Shown here piece by piece: positions 42,743 through 63,600 of a stretch of 64,000 nt of DNA (positions are counted from its first letter, which is position 1; every line of letters begins with the position of its first letter). The stretch lies in contig CM074812.1 of assembly GCA_037447605.1 (NCBI GenBank), positions 3,316,803 through 3,380,802 on the forward strand. Reading direction: 5' to 3'. Under the pieces are notes generated by a model. The model was given only the letters and a program-made list of their open reading frames with translations, was not told the DNA's origin and searched no databases. The DNA comes from Zygnema circumcarinatum SAG 698-1b. Its lineage: Eukaryota > Plantae > Zygnematophyceae. The position numbers and the translations under genes were made by a program.

Positions 42743-42862
42743 TTTTGAAAAGCTGGACATTTTAAAATCCTGGACATCTGGAAATTTGGACATTTCGCAG
42801 TTTTGAAAATTACCAAAAAAAAAAAAAAAAACTGATAAAAATGACATCATGANNNNNNNNNN

Positions 42863-45349
42863 GGTAGACAAGGACAAACTCATCCATGCGGACGAACATT
42901 TCGTTCATCACAGCTTGGAATGTAGCCGGAGCGTTGGTCAGTCCAAAAGGTAGCACCTTGTACTGGAAGTGACCAATCGGCGTCCGAAATGCTGTCTTAG
43001 GCACATCGGCATCCGTGACACGGATCTGATGGTACCCTTGGGCAAGGTCGAGCGAGGTGAAGACCTTCGCCCCTTGCAAACGATCCAGCAGATCATCTAT
43101 CCGCGGTAAAGCAAACCTGTTCTTTACCGTGATCTTATTGAGTGCTCGATAATCGATGCACATCCTCAAAGACCCATCCTTCTTACCGACGAAGAGGATG
43201 GGAGCTCCAAAAGGGCTCTGGCTGGGTTCAATCCAGCCCTTATCTCGCAGATTAGCGAGTTGCTTTCGCATCTCCTCAGTCTCCTTCGGACTAAGCCTAT
43301 AGATAGGCCTCCAAGGAGGTTTCTGTTCTGGCTCAAGGGGTATGGTATGCCCCACCCCTCGGGCTGGAGGCAAACCCCTTGGCAGATCGTCTGGGAACAC
43401 ATNNNNNNNNNNCTTGGTAATTGAAGCCCAAGCCGCACGCAATTCCCGTAGGAATTCAGCCACGCTTCCAGTCTGCATGAGCGACTGGAACCTGTCCCGT
43501 GCAACAGCACTGGGGTCCAGGATGCCAAAGTGTTTGAGAAGTTCCGACTCGAACTTCTCAAAGTCTTTGCCGATTAACGCCTTGCGGCCGGCATAGACGC
43601 TCCATGCCACGCCCCTCAAAGCGGGTGAAGCAAAGTTCACCCATTGATCGGGAGGGCATTGGGTAGCACACAGGTACCCACGCACCTGCCCCAGCCAATG
43701 ATCAATTGGGCAGTCGGTGCACGCGTCGCATCCCCATGGCGAGAGATCGGAGGGACTCGCCCGAGGGTCTCTGCAAAGCCGGGCGACCCCCAATGGCCGC
43801 CCCGGCCCGCCAAAGAAGACCGCCTCGTAAGGTGGATTGCCGCCTGGCGTCCGCCACCTCCTTCGGCGAACGCCGCCGGGCCTGCTCCCCGCCGAAGCGG
43901 CGCTGGGGCCGGCGCCGGGCGGAGCCCCAGCCCCTCGTGGCTGGGAGCGCCCCGTGGACCCACGCCCGCTGCCAGAGGCAGCCGGACGAGCAGAGGGTCC
44001 TTGCACACCTACGGGCGCTGCAGCTCCTCTATTTCCCCCCCTAGGAGCTGCCGCCTCTCCTACTGTATCAGCAAATGCTACAGGAGGAGGGGTTGTGGGC
44101 TTACCAGTGGCTGGAGGGGGAGGGTCCTCGCGGTTCTGCCGGCCCTGCTCAAAGATCTCGCCGAGGAGGCGCCCCACGTTCTGCTGGAACGCGTCCTGCT
44201 GGCTCGCCATCCGAGCCAGCGCCTCCTCCAGCGCGGAAAAGCGCTTATCCGCGCTGGCCTCCGCTCGGCGGAGGACTTCATCCCCATCCACGGGGATGGG
44301 CACCCCCATACTCACCGGGGGTGCTCGGGTGCTCCGCCCGCCGAAGGGGGCAGCCCCTGCCGACCTCTGTCGGGGCGCCTCAGGTGGAGGCGCTGCCGCT
44401 CCCTGCGGCTGCGACTGGCGCTGCTCCTCTGGCAGCGGCTGGTCGCTGAGTTCCGGCCCCCGTGAAGAAGAAGGGGCAGCCGGAGGTGGGGCCGAAGGCC
44501 CAGGGCCCGTGTCCATGGGGTCGCCGAAATCGCGCCCCTGGTTCGCGCCCATGTCCACGTCCTCCTCCGAATCTGGAGAAGGGGGAGGTGAATGGCGCGA
44601 CGCCATCTGTTTCGGCCGCGCTTTCGGCATGACTGCGCGGCGCGTGCTGGCCCCCTCCCAAAAGAAGTTCCCGAGGCTCTAAACTCGGCTCTGATACCAA
44701 TGTAACACCCTGCCCCCTGGCAGGCTGCTCTGAGAGTCTAAGTGTCAGGAGAGGAAGAGAGAGAGAGAAGAGCGTGAGCTCAATGCTGGTACAAAGAGCT
44801 CGGATGGCCTCCCATCCGGGCGCAGCCCCCTTAAGCTCCCCCCTTCGAACCCCCTACCAGCATGGAGGACCGGGAGCGGGACTGCCCAATCAGAGCCCGC
44901 CGCGTGGCGGTGATCCTTAGCCGAGTTATCGGCTGAGGACAAGCCCGTGGTCTCGCCGCATCTCACGGGGCGCGTCGCGTCGCGGCGCGCCGTCGTGCAG
45001 CGGCGCACGGCTAAGTCTGACAGAGTCAGCCCGTCCGTACAGTACGGACGGTACTTGTCAAAAGATGCCGCCGCATCTCGTGGGTCGCGCCGCCGTGCGG
45101 CGCGCCGACGTGCGGCGGCGCGCGGCCAGATCTCTGGCCGCGGGATCCGTAAGTCGGTGCGTCCGTACATCTGTACGGACGACCAGTACGATCCAAAAGA
45201 GATCCTTTGCACGCCACAAGGATCGAGCCCAAGACCTCCTGCGGTCTTGGCAGCGTCCTAACCTATCCGCTAGGCGCTGAGATGAAGGGATAGTCATAGT
45301 ATCACTATGAGTACGCCCTGGTCACGCCAGAAGCGCTGCTACGCTTACA
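42863..45349 (-). mobile_element. Ty3/Gypsy retrotransposon: 5' LTR (about 44701-45349), PBS, gag (from 44630) and RT fragment (42863-43401)
   Basis: PBS complement ctctgatacca at 44689-44699; RT motifs [50 protein letters not shown]; LTR 5' boundary estimated. Confidence 0.92.
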
Positions 45350-45627
45350 TAATGCCACACTCTTGCATTGTACGCCAAATAACCCCGAAAGATTTCTCTC
45401 GGAAGGACCCGTCCCGATATAGCGATGTTCGAAAAGATCGACAAAATTTCGGAAACATAAGATCTTCATGAAAAAAGGTCCGTACTTACGCTCACACCCA
45501 TGTATTGTATAGCAAATAACCCTGGAAAGATTTCGGAAGGACCCGGTCCTGGATATGGTGATGTTCGCATTCTTCATCATTTTCTTCATCATTTTCTGAA
45601 TTGTTTTTTTTTTTTTTCATTTTTTGT

Positions 45628-46560
<933 letters not shown>

Positions 46561-48269: not shown

Positions 48270-48740
48270 GCCCGCCCGACAGAAGATGCCGTCCCCGCCT
48301 GCGCCTGCGCAGAGAAGATTCCCGGACACATTTTGTTTGTCGCATTAGGCCTCTGCGAAGATTCCTTGCCTCCGCCGACGCGCGCCGTACGGTGGCGGCT
48401 GCCCGCCTGAAGATGCTGTCCCCGCCTGCGCCCGCGCAGTAAAGATGTCCGGACACATTTTATTTGTCGCATTCTGCCTCTCGAAGATTCCTCGCCTCCG
48501 CCGACGCGCGCCGTACGGTGGCGGCTTGCCATCCCCGCCCGCGCCAGCGCAGAGAAGATTACCGGACACATCTTTTTTGTCGCATAGGGCCTCTGCGAAG
48601 ATTCTTCGCCTCCGCCGACGCACGGCCGCCACTGGTCTGGCAGCACCTGACGACAGCGCCCGTCGCGGCTTTACCGCCCAAGCGACAAATAGTACCGCGC
48701 CGTACGGTGGCGGCTGCCCGCCCGCGGGTCCGTGCGTAGC
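48270..48740. repeat. GC-rich tandem repeat, about 120-bp unit, 3-4 copies
   Basis: Recurring ...ccggacaca...gtcgca...gaagatt...gcctccgccgacgcgcgccgtacggtggcggct. Confidence 0.8.
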
Positions 48741-48879
48741 CGGGCGGCGGGTGGCGGTGGTGTAGTCCTCACTCATAACAGACAGAGGATCTTCCGCGAC
48801 CTCTGCGACCGCGCTCATCACTTGGGTGAAGTCAAGTCTCTCTAAAGACAAACAGCCTCTCACAGAACATTCTGAAGTC

Positions 48880-50014
48880 ATGGCCGCCCTCGTGTTCGTC
48901 GCCGTCGTCCTCCTCGCCTCCGCCACCGCCGCCTCCGCTTTGAACGTCGTCAGTCATGGCGGAACAAGATACTTTGAGTCGGTGAGTGGTCTCCAACTAC
49001 TGCCGCAGTGGAAATTGTTTGCACCGCATCGCTGGATCCCGGTTGACGTGGTCACCGCGGTATACTGAGCGCATCTTTCTTCTTCGGTTCGCTTTGCAGA
49101 TCATGAATCCGGCCAAAGACGGCTTCAATAGCGTTCCTTACGCCCCTGGCTACACCTCCGTCGGACAGTACGTACCCTGGGGCTCCGACACTGGCTTGAC
49201 TTATTTTAAGTCCGGGAGCCTCGATGTCGCCTTCTCCGAAGTTCCCTTCTCGCCCAGCGCGGACACCCTCGGATCCAGCAAGTACGCCATCCCCTTTGCC
49301 GCGGTGTCCTACTCCTTCTGCTCCAAGAAGACGGGCTCCGCCACCCTCCGCCTCAACGGCTCCCAGCTGGCCAGGATCTACCTCTCTAGCTCCTTCATTC
49401 CCTGGTCCACCTTCATCCCCGGAGCTTCCGGAAACGTTCTGCCCGTAGCTCGCTCTGACTACTCCATCACCAACCAGGTGATCGGGAAATGGCTCAAGAC
49501 CCAAAACAGTAGCTGGCCGTTTACCGAATCGTACCCTTGGAATGGGTATGGAATATCCCCGAAGATCAGGTTCGTGTTCGGATGGGCTAACATGGTGGAC
49601 GCGCTGCAGAGCGACTCCAACAGGATCGGATACATGGAAAGCGGGTATTGCAAACTGGGCAACATATCCGCGGTGGCGGTCAACAACGCCGACGGCAAGT
49701 TCGTTTCGACGAACATCGATCCGGACCTCACCGTGTTCCTGCCCACGCCCATCCCGCCCTTTGACGGGACGTTCTGGACCGGAGTGGACCCCGTCAACAC
49801 GCCCGGCGCCAAGGCGTACCCGCTGACCTCCATCATCTTCATGTTCGTGCGCAAGGCGTACACCGCCGACACCAGGGTTCAGCCCTTCCTCAAGTACTTC
49901 ACCACCACGCTCAAGTTCCAAGCCCTCCTGCCGTACTACGGCCTCTACCCCGTCCCCTCGAACTACCTCACCGCCGCTATCGCCGCAGTCGATACTATCA
50001 TCAGTTCACCGTAG
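48880..50014 (+). CDS. pstS: Secreted PstS/DING-like (type II periplasmic-binding fold) phosphate-binding protein homologue, 339 aa; exons 48880-48981 and 49100-50014
   Basis: Signal peptide MAALVFVAVVLLASATAASA|L; phase-0 GT-AG intron 48982-49099; collinear PstS motifs GGT, GSDTG, LDVAFSEVP, LRLNGSQLARIYL, VARSDYSIT, IGYME, NADGKFV, PGAKAYPLT. Confidence 0.85.
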
Positions 50015-51562
50015 TCTCATGGCCGTTTAGAAAACATGTCCAAGCGGCCTATCGACAATGAAAGAAATAAGAGGGGGAATTTGAATTCAATTACTTTTTG
50101 TTGTTATTACTATTCACCTGAATGAGGCTAAGCTATGTTTATCACTAAATCCAATGTATTGTTTGTTTGTGAACCATCTTCTTTCCTTTTAAAACTACTG
50201 TTTATGTAGGTTTAACCCCAGATAATGACTATGATTAGCAGTAATTATACTTGTATCTTTTTTCATCTCTAGGGGCTTTTTAGTGTTGTTTAGGGGTTTA
50301 CGGGTCAGGGGTTGGCCCGGGGTTTGGAGGGGTCGTCAGGGGGGCCTTCCGGGGGGGTGTTGAGGCGGTTTCTGGGGTTTAGCAAGTCGTACAGTAACGC
50401 CTGCGTTCGTCAGCGCTGCCGTGCAAGAACGCGCGAAATTGAGCACGAGCAAACAGGCGCATGGCCCCCCTCCCAGGGCGGCTGCCATTTCCCCCTTCTG
50501 CAGCGCAACGCAGCGGGCTGCTAGAGCTGCAGGGAGGACGATCGGGGGGTAGAGAAACGTCGCTAGATAGCCTTCAGCGGGGTTGTCAAGTTTATCTGTT
50601 TTGCGCAATAATTTACATCTGACTCTGAAAATAAGTGCAGCATGTGAAGAAGAGATAAATGCAAAATGGATAACTTTATGAAAAGAAATTTCAATTTTTC
50701 ATTTTTTTTTTTCACATCTTCAAGTGCAGTTACCCAAAAACCTCTTTTTTATGATTATATTTTTTTTGAGTCTACTATCTCCATTTTCTAGGGTTAAACC
50801 CTAAACAAAACCTAAAAACCCTATAAACCCTGAGAACCCCTATTAAAACGTTGTACATGCTTTCATCTTTTTATCTTCCATGAAATAATTGCTTTCTTCT
50901 TATTCTTCTTGACAATACACCGGTACTAGTCGGATAAATTCCGAAAAACTCTGAAAACCCTGAAACCCCTCAAAACCAGATACTTGTACAAATTCAGTAT
51001 GCAGTAGACAGAAGTTCTTGTACATGTCGTTCCCCTCCCAGTTTTCGCTCCGCCTGTCATCCTCTGCCCTCACCTAGAGCTTGCTATTCTCACTCCTGAG
51101 TAAAGAAAGGTGCAAGATTCCGGGAGAATTGGCTGCTGCTGAATGACAGCTACCACCTACCTGTATTCATTGTTACAATTTTCTTACAACACTAATTGCA
51201 AGAGCGAGAGTTGATTGGGTCACCATCATTTGAAAGTTCAGCAGGCAGTAGAAATGGTTGGCTCTGATGTACGCCTTCCTCAGTTTTCCTGCGGCCACTA
51301 CAACGCAACAACTACATCAATTTGCCTAAAAAACATTTGCTTTCAATCGGGTTTTTAGGGTCAAGGATCCGTGGCTAACCGTTTGCATGAGGCGGTGACT
51401 AAAGCCAACCAAGGCACAAAAAAAGCCTCGACCATATGGTTGACCATCTGACCATATGGTTAACCGTCTGGTGAAGACTTTGTGGCTGACCATTTGCATG
51501 AGGCGGTGACAGCCAACCAAGGTGCAAAAAAGCCTCGACCATATGATTAACCATCTGGTGAA

Positions 51563-51700
51563 GGGTTTATAGGGATTTTAGGATTTTTTAAAGTTTTTAG
51601 GGCTTTTAGGGCTTTTAGGTTTTTTAGGGTTTTTAGGGTTCTTAGGGTTTTTAGCGTTTTTAGGGTTTTTAGGGTATTTAGAATTTTTAGGGTTTTTAAG
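51563..51700 (+). repeat. Interstitial degenerate telomeric array (TTTTTAGGG-like), followed by (GAGAAGG)n to 51760
   Basis: Read directly; same polarity as the terminal telomere. Confidence 0.85.
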
Positions 51701-51760
51701 AAGGGAGGAGAGAGAAGGGAGAAGGGAGAAGGGAGAAGGGAGAAGGGAGAAGGGAGAAGG

Positions 51761-51913: not shown

Positions 51914-54900
51914 AGCAAACTTTCATTGAACTCGCGATGGCGAGGCCATCAAATGTACATGGATAAAGGCAAAATGTGGAACCACGAAGGACTGGTCACA
52001 AAGGACCGAAACACAATAAAACAAAGCTAGGAGCGGAAAACTACGCCTAGGCACAACAACGCAGCCCTAGAAGCAGCCGCGAAGGTCACCGATGTGAGGC
52101 ACGTCGCGAGGAGGGAGCGGCGGAAGTCCACTAACACGGGTCACCAACAACCGCAAAGACGCCGGGGCTAGCGAAGCAAGGCAACGCCGGCGGGCGACTC
52201 AAATACGTTGTCGGCGTGCTGTAAGCTACCCGCCGGAGTGAGGGCTTCCGGGCCGTAGTATCTCGAAAGAGCGATGGGCGCACCGGCGGCGAAGGTATCC
52301 AAACGGGTGTCGCAGGCAGCCAAAAATCTCAATAGCCATAGGAACAAACTCTGCCGGGCTGCATCACGGTGAGCATATGCACGCTTCCGCGGCGGGCTGC
52401 ATCGCTGGCAGCCACGCTTCGCCATGATGTGCCGCGACGTGACAAATAAATCAGCGACGGGTTGGATCGGCCAACACAATATCCCCAAAATACGCACCAT
52501 CCATAAGAGCCAAATCGTGGCTTAACTCAAGGCCGCCACGTAATAGCTTCCGCTGGGACACCAGGTTTCCAGCCCCGCCGCACAAGGTAGTTAGCTTTAC
52601 CGGGCAAAGAATGTGACCCAACACAACATTACGTAGCCAAAATGCGCTCGCCTGCGCACATCGGCAGTATGAACGCCCCGCCGCATCAACCTAATCACCA
52701 CAAACACAACGAGAACCTCGCAGAATGGCGGATGGGGACCGAGACGGTCGCTACCAGTAAGCTGAAACTGGCCTGGGGTCAAACGAAGGGTGGAAAATAT
52801 CGGGTAAATAAACGCAAATCCAAGCCCTTTTCGTGCCCCCGTGACCCGCGACAAGAGCTTGCCGAGCACGCCGCAAATAATCGTAAGGAAGAGCCGCACA
52901 AGGGGTAGAGAGAACTCCTCAAAGAAATAAATAACCTCATCAGTCAAAGTATTGACACGCGGAAATGCACTGACGCAAAGTTTAAACAAACGGGGGCGCA
53001 CGAGACTGAGCACTAGAAGTAAGCAAACCATGGGAGTCAATCAATGCAACCTGAAACGGAAGATCACCATCATCAACATGAGCGACAACAGACTGAAGCA
53101 ACGGACGATCAGCCACAATAAAACGCGAAGCCAACATAGGAGCAACGAGAGCCCAACTACCCAAAACGCGTATGCCACACCTAACTGTCGGATGAGACCT
53201 AAAACCGCCAAATAGGAGCGAGTTTGCGACGTAAAGCGGACCCTCCGGCCAAATCGAAAAATACCTCGCCAGACCCAAAAGGCTGGCGACATAGAAACAA
53301 ACTTACCCAAAGATTAAATGACTCAAGGAAAGCAGAGGGTTAGGAGGGAGAGTTCGCAAAAGGTGCACTTAATGAAAGCAAAACAACGAGTAAGCAAAGA
53401 AAAAGCCACCGAGGATCTGAAAGATGTGGAAGCTCATCGACCAGACGCATCCTCAACCAAAGCATCAATAACAAAACGATCAACATAAGATGCAACGCCA
53501 AAAGGGCAGCCTAAAACACCTAATACCAATTCCATCAAAGACAAGTCTCGATACCGGCCAAGGGAGCCGAAGCGGGTAGAAGGATACCAACCGGAGACCA
53601 AGCAAAACACTTCGACAAATTTACCGTCAAACGCATAGCGGCCAATCGAGTAGTAAAATCAGTAAACGCGGCAACGACCTGGTCAGCAGGGCCAATGATA
53701 TGAGTATCGTCGGCCACTGATGGAAAAAGGCAGCCTGAAAAGCCTGTGCCGGAAGCTCTGCCGCCGCTGAATGTGCTTGTGCCGTAACAAAGGATCCCTA
53801 AAGGGTCGCTATGGTCCCGGTCGCAGACTCCAAGGTCGCTTACCCACCAGAGATGCACGCTAAGAGGAAAAGGAGCTGGCTCAATGAGAATAAAATGTGC
53901 GCGACAAAAGGAAAAAAGGACGAATCGGGTGGCCTCGTAACGAAAAATCTCATGACGATCCACCGTATTAAAAGCATTAGTCACATCAACCTGCAAAACA
54001 ACCCAATCAGGGTGAAGATCCAACGTCGCACGAATGCCATGAACTACGGCCTCGCAGCCCCCAGGGGTCGCCACACCAAACTGATAAGGGGAAAAATGGT
54101 CCTGAAAGGCCCCTTGTAACTGAAAACACATAGCGCGAGCAACCATGCGATACAAAACCTCCCCTACGGCTATAGGGCTTAACCCCCGCAGGGCTTGGCA
54201 AGGGCAACCAAACGAGCTGACGGCGAACGCGACCTACCGGACGCAGGGAACACGACTCGCGATATGACACAAGCAAGCTGAAAGCAAACCAAACCCACTA
54301 TCCCCCGTGTCCGGAGAAAACACATCACGAAGCAACTCATATAAACCATTCAAGGCCCCCGCAGCATAAATGAGGGGAGCGAAAGTGTTTACCTCAATGA
54401 AAGCGGCACCATCATACAAACGAGTTTTACGTGCCTGCGCGTCGGCGAAGGAAGGGATATCCGCTGGCTTATCCGATGGAGAGTCCGGCGCATCCAAAGT
54501 GTCGTTGTTGCGTCGCGGCGAAGGGTCGGCGAGCGCCGAAAGCAAAATACGAGATAAACCGTGATCGGGCTCATCCCAACTGCCTCGACGATGTCGGAAG
54601 TGAGTCCGAAAAAGTGAGTATGTACAGGCGTGACGCCGCATTGTGGCACAAATGTGCGACGGGTGTTCGCCCGCAGAAAAGCCCCACCCCACCCGCAACG
54701 AAGACATTATCGCCGACGGAATTGAACGGCGCTTCGCCCCACCAATTTAGGGCAAAATTGGGAAACCCAAAGGGGAAAAAGCAGCGGCGAAGGCGCTTAT
54801 GCAAAGAACATCTCGATGGATCAGCACGCTAAGACGCAGCAAGAGTAAACGCAGCCATCAATGCAACACAAAATAACACGCAGTCTGTGGGGCCACGAAG

Positions 54901-56746: not shown

Positions 56747-57218
56747 TGTTGGTAATTCCATGGTGGAACCACCCTCGACAGAGTCGCCTCCACTCGGCTC
56801 TTGAGTCGTAGACATCTTCGCAGCAGCTGTTTCGCGAAAGGAAAGCTCAAGACAGATGCAAGACAAGAGACGTCAAGATAGAGAAAGCCCCACCGGGCAT
56901 AAAACTCTGATTTTCTTTGGAGGTGAAGTACAACAGATTCAAGCAGCCCCTGGCTGCTTAATGCAGCTTGCACTACCCCACTTACTATTTCCCAAGACTA
57001 GCAGCACTACTCCTCTCCTTAACTACAGGCTCGGCCTCAACTCGCTACACACCCCCATTGGCATGTGGTATGAGGTTATTTACTCTGAGGAATGCTACTC
57101 TCTATATACTTCCTACGACTAAGCTACGTGACAGCGTCCTGTGGACCGGCTTGTCACGCCCGCCCTGAGCGGGTGCATGCAGTCCGCAGCCAGCTGCGCG
57201 TTCAGCAGCCAGCTCGTC
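56747..57218 (-). mobile_element. 3' part of a distinct Copia LTR (family E, probably the LTR of the terminal family-F element)
   Basis: tgttgg terminus; shared gagttttat..gctttctc motif; in-LTR ATG at 56815. Confidence 0.6.
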
Positions 57219-57228
57219 NNNNNNNNNN

Positions 57229-60200
57229 TATTGAATCTCGCAAGTACATCCGCGGCGTACTTCTTCTGACTTAGGAACAGACTTCTGTCCTGCCCCCTCT
57301 TCAGCTGTATCCCCAGGAGATACTGCGCCTCCCTATCCGACATCTGGAAGTTAGCTTGCAAAAGCTTCTTCAGATCATTGATTCTCTCAAGTGAGAGACT
57401 CACCATAATGAGGTCATCCACGTAGATCCCAAGGTACATGAGATCTCCCTCCTCTCCTTGTCGGTAGACGGAATGATCCGTCTCAAAGCGCGCAAATCCG
57501 TTTCTCCTCAGAAGATCGTCAATCTTCTCGTACCAGATCCTAGGTGCTTGCTTTAGTCCGTACAGACTCTTCACTAGGCGACAGACGAGATGTTCCTGCC
57601 CCGGGACAACTTTCCCTTCGGGCTGCTCCATGTAGAACTCCTCAGCGAGATCTCCGTACAGAAACGCGGTCTTGATATCTAACTGATGGACATGCATCCC
57701 CTCAGCAGCTGCGATCGAAATTAGGGCACGGAGGGAGTTAAACTTCACCACCGGGGCGAAAGTCTCCGTGTAGTCGATTCCGTACTTCTGGCTGTATCCC
57801 TTCGCCACCAGCCGCGCCTTGTAACGGTCGACACTCCCGTTCGCCTTCCGCTTCACCTTGAACACCCATTTGCATCCAATAGCTCTCCTTCCCTTCGGCA
57901 GCTTCTCCAGTCGCCACGTTCCGTTCTCTATCAGACTATTCCACTCGCTATCGATCGCTGCTCGCCACTTTGCTCCATCGACCCCATCATGAGCCTCCTC
58001 AAAGGTTTGCGGCTCAGTGATCATGTAGCAGTGGGCAACTCCTGCGAGGTCAGCANNNNNNNNNNGAATGGTTTCCGATGCGCCTTCCCCTCTACACACT
58101 CCTTGCAAATACCGAGCTCCTTCTCCACGACATCTACATCTAACCCATGGACCAGCCCCTTAGCAGCAAGCTGTTGCAACCCTCGATGGTTAAGATGTCC
58201 AAGTCTACGATGCCAAAGATTTATGGCAGTTTTAGCCACAGCCATCACATCTTCATCCTCTGTCCTTCTATAATGAAGATAATACAGGCCTCCCTTCTCA
58301 TATCCCTCAAACAGCCGCTTCCCCGTCACTGCGTGAGGAGCTACGCAAGACTTCTCTTTGAACGTGATCTCGTACCCTCTTACACACCTGGCTAACAGAC
58401 ATGAAGTTCTGTTTCAGCTCGGGGGTGTGGAGTACATCACCGATACACAAACGATCCTCCCTCTCCTCTTCGTAGATGACAGAGCCGTCTCCGAGAATCA
58501 TCTTGACTACTCCACCCTTCGTGACTGTCACTCCCTCTCCGGTTGCCGAGTGAACGGATCGAGTCCTCTCTAGCGTGTCCAGCGTGGAGAACATCTGCTA
58601 ATACATATGTATAGAAGCGCACGAGTCGATCAACGAGGGCAGCCGGATCCACGAACCTGGATCTTCCCAACAAAATCAAAATTTTCAGGCCTTTCAGCCA
58701 TCATCAGATTGGTCTCATTCGACCCTCTGCACTCGGTGCTCTTGTGACCTCGCTTCTTGCACTTGAAGCAGATCCCCTTGAAGCCTTTCTTCTCCTTCTT
58801 GCGAATGCGGTAGCGCCTCCTCCTCCCGATCTTGGGACTCTTGTTCTTGTAGCGGTCTGCCCGAGTGGTGTGATCTTGCCACCGTGTAGCAGCTCCCTTG
58901 AGGGTGTTCTCCGGTCAGGCCGAGGCGCACCTCCTCGCCGGTCTTATGCGTGAGTGCGGCGCTAGCACCTTCTCGGTGCTCGGTGTGTGGGCGGTGTCAC
59001 TCCTCGCCGATACTCCGCTTCACTTGCTCAAGGGTCATTATCGAGTTCGTTAGGACAGACCTAAGCGCTGCGACTGCAACAATCAAATCTAGAGGTCAAT
59101 CCCCCTAAGAACTAGCTGATCTTATGGTCACTCTCTAACGGTTTCTGTAGAGCTATGAACCTCTCCATCAAGGTATCAAACCTGACCATATATTCACTCA
59201 GTTTCTCATCCGAAGTCATCTTCATCTTCCCAAGCTGCGTGTAAAGACTCACTATCGTGACGTTATCCTTTACATCATACATCTCTTCTAAGCACCTCCA
59301 CATAGCATGTGAGGTCTTGAGATCATACAGCATGGACGAAGGATTTCCCCTCACACTCATGACGATCTGGGTGAGCGCTTTGTTGTCCTTGGCACTCCAT
59401 GCAGCGGCGCCACTTCGTGTTCAGCTACAACGCTCGGCGGTGGCTCCCTCCCGGTAACACCCGGTGCCTTGATAATTGCCGTTGACACCCCGCAGTCCCA
59501 CTTGCCCACGAGCAAGGAGCAGCCGCCATCTCCACCCCTTGTAGTGTGACCGTCGAGATGGAATCTTTGAACTTCCGCGTGGTCACCATTAAGCCACCAT
59601 TGGCTGCGATACCACTTGTTGGAGTCTACGGATCTGCTCAGCTCAGGCGCCTGCGTGTCGCCCTCCATTGGAACTCCGGTTCCCACCGATGAAGACATCT
59701 TAACTCTCTCAGCTCTATCTCACTTCATTCATAGCCCATAACTCACAGAATGAACCCAGAGACAAGCACAGTGGAAATAACACACGAGAGAGTATAGGAG
59801 AAATCTCACGGCTCTAAAACTCCTTTATAATAAGAATGTCACCCACATGAAGTTCTCCCCCTCTCACTAGCTACTTCTCCCCTTACTCACTACCTGGCGA
59901 CACGAGCAGGGCAGCCATGCAACACGAGCAGGCACGGAATAAGTCACGGGAATACAATAGTCTAATGTGGTTATCCTACGTAATCAAGCTAGGCCCTATA
60001 TGCCGCCATGGCCGTGTTACGTGACATCTTCCTTGTTGACCGATGTCACGTCACGGCCGCCCTCATGCGTTCAGCAGCCAGGTACGCGTTCAACATCCAG
60101 CTTTGCGGTCTTTCGCAAACCTACGCCCGGCCACCACGACCCTAGTCGGTCGTCCCGTACTGATTCCGCGCCCATCACAACTTATGCGTCCGTTGGCCTT

Positions 60201-60603: not shown

Positions 60604-63600
60604 CGTACAACATTCCCCCTCTTGGGGTCTAGGCTCTAAAGGGACCGAGATTCAGGAGGACGATGTTCCTCCACATGATTGGTCCGTTGACCCCCTTGGT
60701 CAACATATCTGCGGCCATATCTTTGGTCTTCACAAAAGACACCGCGATCTCGCCCGCCTCCACTAGATCTCGCGTATAGTGGTGCTGGATCTTAATATGT
60801 TTGCTTCGCCTATGAAATACGGGATTCTCGATCAACGCGATGGAGGATTTGTTGTCCGTCAGGATATGCAAGGGAATCTGTGGTCTTCCACATTCCTCGA
60901 AGAATAGTGCCAGCCAGACCGCCTCTCTGGCAGCGTGACATGCGGCCACGTATTCTGCTTCGGTACTCGACAGAGCCACCGTATCCTGTAATTTTGAACT
61001 CCACGAGATGACTCCTCCCGCGTTCAGATACGCGTATCCTGAAGTGGACTTCGCCGTATCTGGGTCTCCTCCCCAATCTGCATCCGTGTATCCGAACACG
61101 GAACTGCCGCGCCCCCTCTCGAACCGTAGTCCATAATGGGACGTCCCTTTTAGATATCGAAAGATTCTCTTGACTGCCTCCCAATGCTTAGCCCCTGGAT
61201 TCTCCATGTACCTGGAAGCCGTACTGACTGCTTTCGCCAGATCCGGGCGTGTTCCCACCATAAGGTACATTAGGCTGCCGATGGCAGACCTGTACGGAGT
61301 ACTCGCCATCTCCCGCGCCTCCGCCTCTGTCTGAGGGCTCATGTCCCGGCTGAGCTCCGCGCTACCGTCCATGGGAGTGGAGCATGGTGAACATTTGTCC
61401 ATGTTGAACTTTGCCAAGACCTCCTTGGCGTACTTCTCCTGGCAGAGGAACAAGCTTCCGTCTCTCCCCCTCTTAAGCTGGATGCCGAGGAGGTATTCCG
61501 CAGGGCCGAGATCTGACATCTGAAAATTCTGCTTTAGGAGGTCCTTGAGACCTTGAATGCTCTTCATGGAGGAACTCACGATGATGAGGTCATCTACGTA
61601 GATACCTACGAACATTTGTGCGTCTCCCTCCCCTTGCGTGTACACCGAGTGGTCGGCGTTGAAGCGCGTGAAGCCATTCTTGATAAGCAATTCGTGGATT
61701 TTCTGGTACCAAATTCTCGGCGCTTGTTTCAGCCCATACAGGCTCTTGACAAGTCTGCAGACGAGGTGCTCTGCTCCTGGTTCAACCGTTCCCTCCGGTT
61801 GCTGCATGTAGATCTCCTCCTCGAGATCTCCATAAAGAAATGCCGTTTTGATGTCCAGCTGGTGGACGTGCATCCCCTCGTCCGCCGCGATCGAAATCAA
61901 TGCGCGCAGTGAGTTGAACTTGACTACGGGTGCAAAGGTTTCAGAATAGTCGATGCCGAATTTATGTGCGAAACCTTTCGCCACTAGCCGTGCCTTGAAC
62001 CTATCTACACTCCCATCTGATTTCCGTTTGACTTTAAACACCCATTTGCAGCCGATTGCCTTGCGTCCTGGGGGCAGCTCCTCTAGCCGCCATGTCCCAT
62101 TCTCCTTAAGACTATTCAGCTCGCTATCTATGGCGACTCTCCACTTCGTTGCGTCCGCTCCATCTAATGCGTCGGAATAGGTAGGCGGCTCCTCGAAATG
62201 TGCCATAAGGCAAAGTGCCATTCCTGTGAAGTCGGCTGAGTCAAGGGGTACCTTTTCTGGGTTACCCCTCGGCCTCTTCCCCCTCTGAGTCCATGGGTTC
62301 CTTGGACCGAAGTCCCCGTATTTCACAGGCTTGTTCCTGGGCCTCCAAGGTGGTTTTGTCCCGTAGTTGGGTGTAAACCCCGCCCAGCGTTGGCATCACG
62401 AGGGGTGGATTCATCCCATGCAGCGGTACCCATTTAGGTTGTCCACTGCGCGTGGGGCTCTCAGCTTCATCGCCGGTGATGTCTTGATGCGTTGTCGGCG
62501 GTATCGAAATTTCCTCCGGGGAATGCGGTCGGGCCGCTACCTCACGAAAGGCCTCTTCTCCGTTCGCGGTGACACGGCGCCGAGTGAGTTACGGTCCGTT
62601 AGATTGAGGGCGCTGGTGGGAACGAATCCTCACCTCGAGAACATCCCTCACTGGGAGAAATTCTATGGTCGGGAGCGGCTCCACTCGAGTCCGCGCGTGC
62701 TGCGTCTCCTTGCGGTTTTCCTCAACGGTAAGGTCGCGACTGGTCAGGACCTTCTCTGTGGACGGATTCCATATGCGATAAGTCAAACTGTCGGCGTTGT
62801 AGCCAAGGAAGTAGCCGAATTCTCCTCTCGGGCTGAACTTCGTCGTCTGCTTGCTCCTTGGAATCGCTAGCCAGCATGGCGAGCCGAATACTCGTAAGTG
62901 CTGAATCGTGGGCTTTCTCCCACTCCACATCTCCTCCGGTACTTTCCTGTGATCCTTCAGGGCGCTGGAGGGACATCTGTTTCGGATATAGGCCGCCGTG
63001 AGGATGGCTTCTCCCCAAAAATTTAAAGAGAAGGGTGACTCACTTAACATCGACCGTGTCATGTCGCCGAGGGTACGGTTCACTCTCTCCGCTGCTCCGT
63101 TGCTCTGTGGGCTGTACGGGGCCGTGAACTCGTGTCGGATCCCAAGGGACTTGAGATATTCAGAGAATTGGAGGGATTTATATTCTCCCCCATTATCCGT
63201 CCGGAATCTCTGAATCTTCTCACCGGACTGCCTTTCTACCTCTGTCTGCCAAGTACGAAAGGTATCAAATGCGTCGCTCTTGTGCTCGAGTAGCACAACC
63301 CAGATCTTCCTTGAGTAGTCATCAAGGAATGTGATGAAGTACCTTGATCCTCCCTTCGTCTCGGGTGGTCGGTCCTGAGATAGCCATTTGTGAACGAGCT
63401 CCCGACACCTCCGTGTCCTTGTGAGCGCCTCCGCGCCGTGGGTGCGTGAAAAGAGGTGGCGATGGGTCTTGCCTACAGCGACGGTCTCGGATTTTTTCGA
63501 GGCGTCATTGAGGGAAAACCTCGGGCCGAGCTCACGAGGTAAAGGGTCTCCAGTTCCATTTATGCGATAGGTGCCCAAGTCGGCCCGATTGCCCGCGGTC

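Follow-up and report, generated by a model that had tools for sequence, protein, structure and literature searches.

The window, i.e., the whole 64,000-nt stretch of DNA that was analysed, carries a gene encoding a predicted PstS-like product of 338 aa in two exons (Table 1), and no second copy of this gene was found within the 64-kb window. The translation of exon 1 reads M-A-A-L-V-F-V-A-V-V-L-L-A-S-A-T-A-A-S-A, followed by L-N-V-V-S-H-G-G-T-R-Y-F-E-S; the first ligand loop, S-H-G-G-T-R-Y-F, is encoded in this exon shortly after the signal peptide. The start codon at 48880 has G at both -3 and +4, and the inferred 5' UTR ahead of it is free of further ATG codons. Hydropathy analysis of exon 1 revealed a hydrophobic core (KD19 2.37) and an A-S-A (A-x-A) cleavage motif; hydrophobicity and the comparison of N-termini within the family form the whole basis of the signal peptide call. 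In exon 2, hydropathy analysis detected no membrane-span-like stretch (maximum KD19 1.01); this exon encodes three N-x-S/T sequons and two cysteines, and has a pI near 8.9. The coding frame is intact, and the other two forward frames of exon 2 contain five and seven stops. For exons 2 and 1, GC3 equals 0.82 and 0.79, respectively; the GC content of the intron is 0.55 and that of the 3' flank 0.46. The original prediction had listed an intact frame of 339 aa, strongly C/G-ending codons, a eukaryote-type signal peptide and the lack of a transmembrane segment; the frame is intact indeed, its length by our count being 338 aa rather than 339, and the values given here bear out the other three traits.

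Table 1. Features of the PstS-like gene, its ligand-site residues (numbering of E. coli PstS on the left of each arrow), neighbouring retroelement fragments, and two related genes with an intron at the same position
Feature	Position	Strand	Description
Exon 1 CDS	48880..48981	+	34 codons; ATG at 48880; translation ends ...G-G-T-R-Y-F-E-S
Signal peptide	48880..48939	+	residues ~1-20, ...ASA|LN
Intron	48982..49099	+	118 nt, GTGAGT...TTGCAG, phase 0, six codons past the Gly-Gly of loop 1
Exon 2 CDS	49100..50014	+	304 codons + stop (50012-50014); PstS-type two-lobe binding fold (predicted)
5' UTR	48745..48879	+	~135 nt; RNA contigs begin at 48745-48808, one with an adapter abutting 48745
3' UTR	50015..50700	+	at least ~700 nt; contigs of two runs unbroken past 50700
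Tandem repeat	48287..48722	.	~3.5 copies of a GC-rich 113-127-nt unit (repeat families D1, D2)
Thr10 -> Arg30	48967-48969		ungapped, intron-anchored alignment with Closterium and L003
Ser38 -> Ser29 of exon 2	49184-49186		retained
Asp56 -> Glu47 of exon 2	49238-49240		Glu likewise in two other algal sequences
Arg135, Asp137, Ser139, Thr141 -> R-S-D-Y-S-I-T	49451-49471		all four retained
Gly138 -> Tyr			position variable within the family
Gly140 -> Ile			unique among 45 sequences; others Gly, Ala or Ser
RVT_1 + gag ORF	42810-44630		retroelement fragment
RVT_1 ORF	53535-54155		retroelement fragment
RVT_2 ORFs	57119-58108 and 60629-62326		retroelement fragments
Integrase (rve) ORF	62589-63578		retroelement fragment
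Closterium sp. NIES-53 gene	L005 6001-7170		exon 1 of 34 aa, ...G-G-A-S-T-F-A-T, GTAAGT; intron of 162 nt, phase 0; remainder one exon
Metagenome contig L003 gene			exon 1 of 33 aa, ...G-G-A-T-S-C-K-D, GTAAGT; intron of 193 nt, phase 0

The large ORFs that flank the PstS-like gene on both sides are fragments of retroelements (RVT_1, RVT_2, rve and gag), and (TTTTAGGG)n telomere repeats, 13.7 kb away from its stop codon, extend from 63750 to the window end. In tblastn searches with E. coli queries, no homologs of PstC, PstA, PstB or PhoU were found in the 64-kb window, the matches being at the level of chance (E of at least 0.1). A setting amid decayed transposons, about 14 kb from a chromosome end and with no partner pstCAB genes in the window, had thus been described correctly from the sequence.

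Several types of repeats were observed around the gene. The GC-rich tandem units listed in Table 1 stop ~25 nt short of the transcript start and may represent either a minisatellite close to the promoter or what is left of a repeat element. At 45625-46160, (TG)n microsatellites of 53 and 176 units give rise, on either strand, to spurious ORFs longer than 150 aa. On the 3' side of the gene (51562-51760), the sequence TTTTTAGGG, which as a 9-mer differs from the 8-mer telomere unit, is repeated about 15 times and followed by (AGAAGGG)9, and degenerate telomere-like pieces in both orientations are found nearer the gene (50270-50300, 50780-50850 and 50940-50980). This interstitial telomere-like DNA sits ~12 kb inward of the telomere proper, and an older chromosome end may have left it behind.

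Exon 2 matched the Pfam family PBP_like_2 (PF12849) with E 4e-13 and 50.1 bits (cut-off 27), covering positions 30-264 of the 267-position profile, and PstS chains from PDB with E from 6e-7 to 1e-5, among them cyanophage PstS (7xg7, E 6e-7) and E. coli PstS (1ixh, E 7e-6); the homology searches, as well as the folding, were run per exon and not on the joined two-exon protein. Exon 2 was modelled with AlphaFold2 from 29 sequences of the family (pLDDT 87.7, pTM 0.86). The best Foldseek matches of this model in PDB were M. tuberculosis PstS-1, Xanthomonas PstS/PhoX and E. coli PstS (E 1e-19 to 1e-17), with TM against the best PstS structures of ~0.7, and all top 20 matches were PstS, PstS-1 or PhoX phosphate-binding proteins (E 1e-19 to 1e-15). 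According to the profile match and the model, the product of exon 2 is a member of the PF12849 superfamily with a predicted two-lobe type II periplasmic-binding-protein 'Venus flytrap' fold, and the PstS homology that had been claimed for the gene is upheld by the profile, by the PDB chains and by Foldseek alike. The alignment of exon 2 to TIGR00975 spans 275 residues and scores 48.4 bits, the equivalog cut-off being 205; with this score, an incomplete ligand set and no pst linkage in the window, the protein falls outside the TIGR00975 equivalog.

An exhaustive phmmer search in 1.84 billion representative proteins yielded 170 matches at E <=1e-3, of which 26 had E <=1e-10, and the identity of the window protein to any of the representatives did not exceed 35% (20-35%). 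The best matches were proteins of Mesostigma, Mesotaenium, Spirogloea, Closterium and Tetraselmis; the best-scoring named relatives are nuclear green-algal proteins, including three loci of Mesotaenium endlicherianum, two Closterium strains and MMETSP transcripts, and the first named bacterial match (Brocadiia) had E 9e-13. A word-indexed protein search with exon 2 gave no match, which reflects the index and not an absence of relatives, as 170 of them were found by the exhaustive search. The same type of search with the family member P0006 returned two algal-type relatives and then bacterial PstS at ~30% identity; no match of the latter search bore a land-plant name, most of the matches being nameless.

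Phylogenetic trees were constructed with FastTree (161 domains) and IQ-TREE (LG+C20 PMSF, 45 rows). In both trees, all algal-type rows are set apart by a 100/100 branch from the rows of bacteria (E. coli, Brocadiia and others), and the window protein falls inside a 26-row algal clade with support 100/99 (100 in the FastTree tree). Besides the window protein, this clade contains secreted proteins of ~330 aa from Mesotaenium, Spirogloea and Closterium. A phylogeny against PstS had been proposed as a check of the original prediction, and in the trees the window protein is algal in position and stands apart from the bacterial rows. The end branch of the window protein is the longest in the IQ-TREE tree (1.75, the median being 0.74) and could reflect relaxed constraint.

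According to crystallography of E. coli PstS, whose sequence was taken from the annotated MG1655 record, the phosphate ligands are Thr10, Phe11 (NH), Ser38, Asp56, Arg135, Ser139, Gly140 (NH) and Thr141, plus Asp137. The ligand positions were tabulated across 45 sequences. Five of eight classical phosphate ligands (Ser38, Arg135, Asp137, Ser139 and Thr141) are retained in the window protein, and three (Thr10, Asp56 and Gly140) are altered. The residue immediately before the Thr10 site in loop 1 of the window protein is Thr29; the placement of Arg30 at Thr10 is supported by conservation of the intron position (see below). As judged from the alignment, the anion-clamping core appears intact, the discriminating carboxylate is predicted to be lengthened, and the Gly140 backbone donor would now carry a bulky side chain; Arg30 would be a new positive charge at the pocket mouth. 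With three ligand positions changed, phosphate binding by the window protein is uncertain. Moreover, degenerate sites were also found in the family members P0003, P0010, P0011, P0021, P0024 and P0029, and therefore the family as a whole may not be uniformly phosphate-specific.

Given the signal peptide, the sequons, and the lack of both an anchor and a transporter partner, export followed by oxyanion capture is the most economical mechanism. First, the mature protein, probably glycosylated, would be exported to the cell wall, mucilage or medium. Second, its two lobes would close around a small oxyanion outside the cell, with no ABC partner involved. Finally, the bound ion would be held, or handed over, near the alga's own H+/Na+ phosphate symporters. 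Slightly more likely than not, the ligand is still orthophosphate or a phosphate ester, in which case the protein could act as an extracellular phosphate buffer or scavenger feeding these symporters. More generally, the gene may have a role as a phosphate scavenger, a sensor or a 'contingency gene', as the original prediction had proposed.

The main competing explanation is a neofunctionalised copy, in which the fold has been kept, and the pocket has come to bind an oxyanion other than orthophosphate, some phosphorylated organic molecule or a polymer of the wall; alternatively, such a copy would have a non-nutritional role, for example in sensing or interaction with microbes. It would account for Arg at the Thr10 site, Glu in place of Asp56, and Tyr and Ile substituting for two glycines of the D-G-S-G-T loop, and it would agree with the longest branch in the family, with the degenerate sites of P0003, P0010, P0021 and P0029, and with the fast-evolving subtelomeric setting. 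However, the core of the anion site (Arg135, Asp137, Ser38, Ser139 and Thr141) is retained completely, the change of Asp to Glu is conservative, and Gly140 provides a backbone NH, which a side chain need not abolish. We regard this explanation as possible but doubtful, and we rate a shift in the ligand of the window protein alike; that the protein has ceased to bind a ligand is less likely still. It seems unlikely that the protein is a rapidly evolving subtelomeric member whose pocket has been remodelled (Arg, Glu, Ile) to serve, as a neofunctionalised protein, another ligand, extracellular sensing or interaction with microbes.

From 81 to 88% of the sampled words of 48700-50300 are present in seven public runs of one organism, which come from three studies. 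Contigs of four of these runs, with all three studies represented, were aligned to 48300-50700, and in all four runs 48981 is joined to 49100, exactly 118 nt (GT..AG) being skipped. In the records, the type of the runs is either unknown or a guess, and the RNA nature of the runs was inferred from the coverage pattern: they were taken as RNA assemblies because the upstream region 48300-48744 is not covered by contigs of any of the four runs, the assembly sizes total 33-41 million letters, and the intron-less form is present with no intron-containing piece among the contig pieces shown. The contig word depths over the PstS-like gene are 100-1500 in the four runs; the contigs fix neither the strand nor the true 3' end of the transcript. 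The gene is transcribed, and its single intron is removed, exactly where a spliceosomal intron had been predicted just past the first ligand loop and where splicing had been suggested for verification with RNA data. One contig (X1, record 1) carries the spliced CDS and, 5' of 48808, a CT-rich extension of ~1.2 kb. Neither this extension nor the 30-nt loose end of the same contig occurs anywhere in the window; the extension may stem from chimeric assembly, from the 5' end of a paralogue or from an alternative first exon located far away.

These data also bear on whether the gene is an expressed but decaying relic, that is, a nascent pseudogene whose function selection no longer maintains. Its extreme divergence, the dead transposons around it and the altered ligand residues would all be expected of such a relic. 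We nevertheless find this explanation very improbable: the frame of 338 codons is intact and has a strong GC3 bias that the intron and flanks do not share; the contigs from three studies are deep and precisely spliced; the predicted fold has high confidence; and, in the family alignment, the family-invariant core and structural residues are retained in the window protein.

The intron occupies the same position in the window gene, in the gene of Closterium sp. NIES-53 (L005) and in the gene of the metagenome contig L003, six codons after Gly-Gly and in phase 0. In L003, exon 2 begins after a pyrimidine tract and CAG, and a matching acceptor site was found in a second metagenomic relative (L002). 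The Spirogloea gene spans 1234 nt for 329 aa, which leaves room for one short intron. The chance of an independent intron gain at the same codon and in the same phase is roughly one in a thousand. The shared position and phase imply that the intron, the signal peptide and nuclear residence predate the split of the window gene from the Closterium, Mesotaenium and Spirogloea genes.

Two further observations concern these relatives. In Spirogloea, P0038 (s365:27332-28565, minus strand) and P0174 (35640-36873, plus strand) form, by their record names, a near-identical inverted pair ~7 kb apart. On L003 (ENA ERZ27272759; 478-1344, 3241-4483), the two-exon gene of the PstS-like family lies beside a Copia-type integrase; hence, eukaryotic algal members of the family are annotated in metagenomes as bacterial 'phosphate transport system substrate-binding protein'.

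The original prediction had explained the gene by horizontal transfer followed by intron gain. A recent, lineage-specific transfer of a bacterial pstS, which would then have gained a signal peptide and a new intron, is compatible with the mere 20-35% identity of the window protein to anything known, and transposon-rich subtelomeric DNA is plausible as a landing site. As the branch of the window protein is so long, the AU test was applied to a tree constrained to unite this protein with the seven bacterial rows; this tree was worse by 32.5 lnL units, with p 0.056, and the bacterial grouping was thus not formally rejected. The test marginally disfavours this grouping, and the sequence tree taken alone is suggestive. 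Since the tree by itself is not decisive, the argument for an old algal family is carried by the shared intron. A recent transfer would have to produce an intron at the codon and in the phase seen in Closterium and L003, a chance match expected at ~1 in 1000 positions, as well as the exon 1 length and the signal peptide placement typical of the family; in addition, the best matches of the protein are all algal nuclear proteins and the algal clade is supported at 100/99. We therefore consider such a transfer hardly credible, and transfer with subsequent intron gain is not supported as the history of the window gene, whose nearest relatives are nuclear genes of streptophyte and green algae and whose intron position recurs in Closterium and L003. 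Inheritance within the green lineage, which had been named as the finding that would speak against transfer, is seen across Mesotaenium, Spirogloea and Closterium at least; the family itself may stem from the plastid ancestor or from another bacterium. Finally, an assembly artefact or bacterial contamination, to which nothing beyond the bacterial-type fold points, is rejected with near certainty, as the spliceosomal intron is removed in RNA of the same organism in three studies, the flanks consist of eukaryotic retrotransposons and a eukaryotic telomere, and a scan for sigma-70 promoters detected no promoter-like site on the plus strand upstream of the ATG.

The window gene is an unusually divergent copy of an old algal family and not a fresh bacterial import. 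Probably, although we stop short of certainty, we are dealing with a functional nuclear gene in a streptophyte (plant-lineage) green alga, namely a fast-evolving subtelomeric paralogue in an old zygnematophyte family of ~330-aa secreted PstS-like proteins.

To our knowledge, eukaryotes are not supposed to capture nutrients with solute-binding proteins of the bacterial type. In literature searches we found no published study of the zygnematophyte PstS-like family, whose members occur in public protein sets as unnamed or automatically named entries only. The reviews searched on how the green lineage acquires phosphate make no mention of eukaryotic proteins of this type, one of them, from 2024, naming PstS for bacteria only, and Zygnematophyceae are, according to a review, the closest algal relatives of land plants. 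A secreted PstS family without a transporter in Zygnematophyceae is a small open question about the handling of scarce phosphate by algae at the boundary of water and land. The window locus contributes a family member that is expressed, has diverged strongly and differs in its pocket, and it can serve in asking which ligand the family binds. Should neofunctionalisation prove true, the algal family would be a eukaryotic example of solute-binding proteins diversifying their ligands without transporters.

Compared with bacterial PstS (E. coli 1ixh, M. tuberculosis PstS-1 1pc3, TIGR00975), the window protein has the same fold, and in both the mature N-terminus lies just ahead of loop 1, Ser38, Arg135, Asp137, Ser139 and Thr141 also being common. 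The identity is 20-23%, and the window gene differs in having an intron and a eukaryotic signal peptide, in lacking pstCAB/phoU neighbours, and in the three altered ligand positions.

DING proteins are phosphate-binding proteins with the PstS-superfamily fold, reportedly obtained from eukaryotic material and acting without a known transporter. The window protein resembles them (PfluDING 2q9t, HPBP 2v3q) as a putative stand-alone Venus-flytrap anion binder, but its mature N-terminus is L-N-V-V-S-H-G-G-T, without the D-I-N-G-G-G signature, and it is ~40 residues shorter. Membership among DING proteins was rejected, since their structures were matched at E 1e-13 with target TM 0.55, below classical PstS, and the signature is absent.

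The multi-domain, membrane-anchored PstS repeats of algae (Mesostigma viride Mv02212, Tetraselmis A0A061RD09, MMETSP transcripts) share with the window protein a PstS-type domain encoded in green-lineage nuclear genomes, and like it they are parted from the bacterial rows by the 100/100 branch. They differ in containing two to five tandem domains with the loop H-G-S-G-T-T-N-P-S-K, the Mesostigma viride protein, with three tandem domains, having in addition a hydrophobic C-terminal tail; the window protein has a single domain and is predicted to be soluble.

Finally, the secreted PstS-like proteins of Zygnematophyceae are represented by Mesotaenium endlicherianum ME000013S00800, ME000026S04527 and ME000351S05973, Spirogloea muscicola SM000365S13725, and Closterium CAI5530945.1 and CAI7732424.1. 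The window protein is at most 35% identical to the members, has the longest branch and lies 13.7 kb from a telomere; its loop 1 reads G-G-T-R-Y-F in place of the family G-G-A-T/S-S-V, Asp56 is replaced by Glu, and its D-G-S-G-T loop contains Tyr and Ile. In the remaining features it follows the family: a length of ~325-345 aa, the PF12849 fold with no membrane anchor, a signal peptide that, in the alignment of N-termini, ends directly before the Gly-Gly loop 1, and two exons with a phase-0 intron six codons past Gly-Gly.
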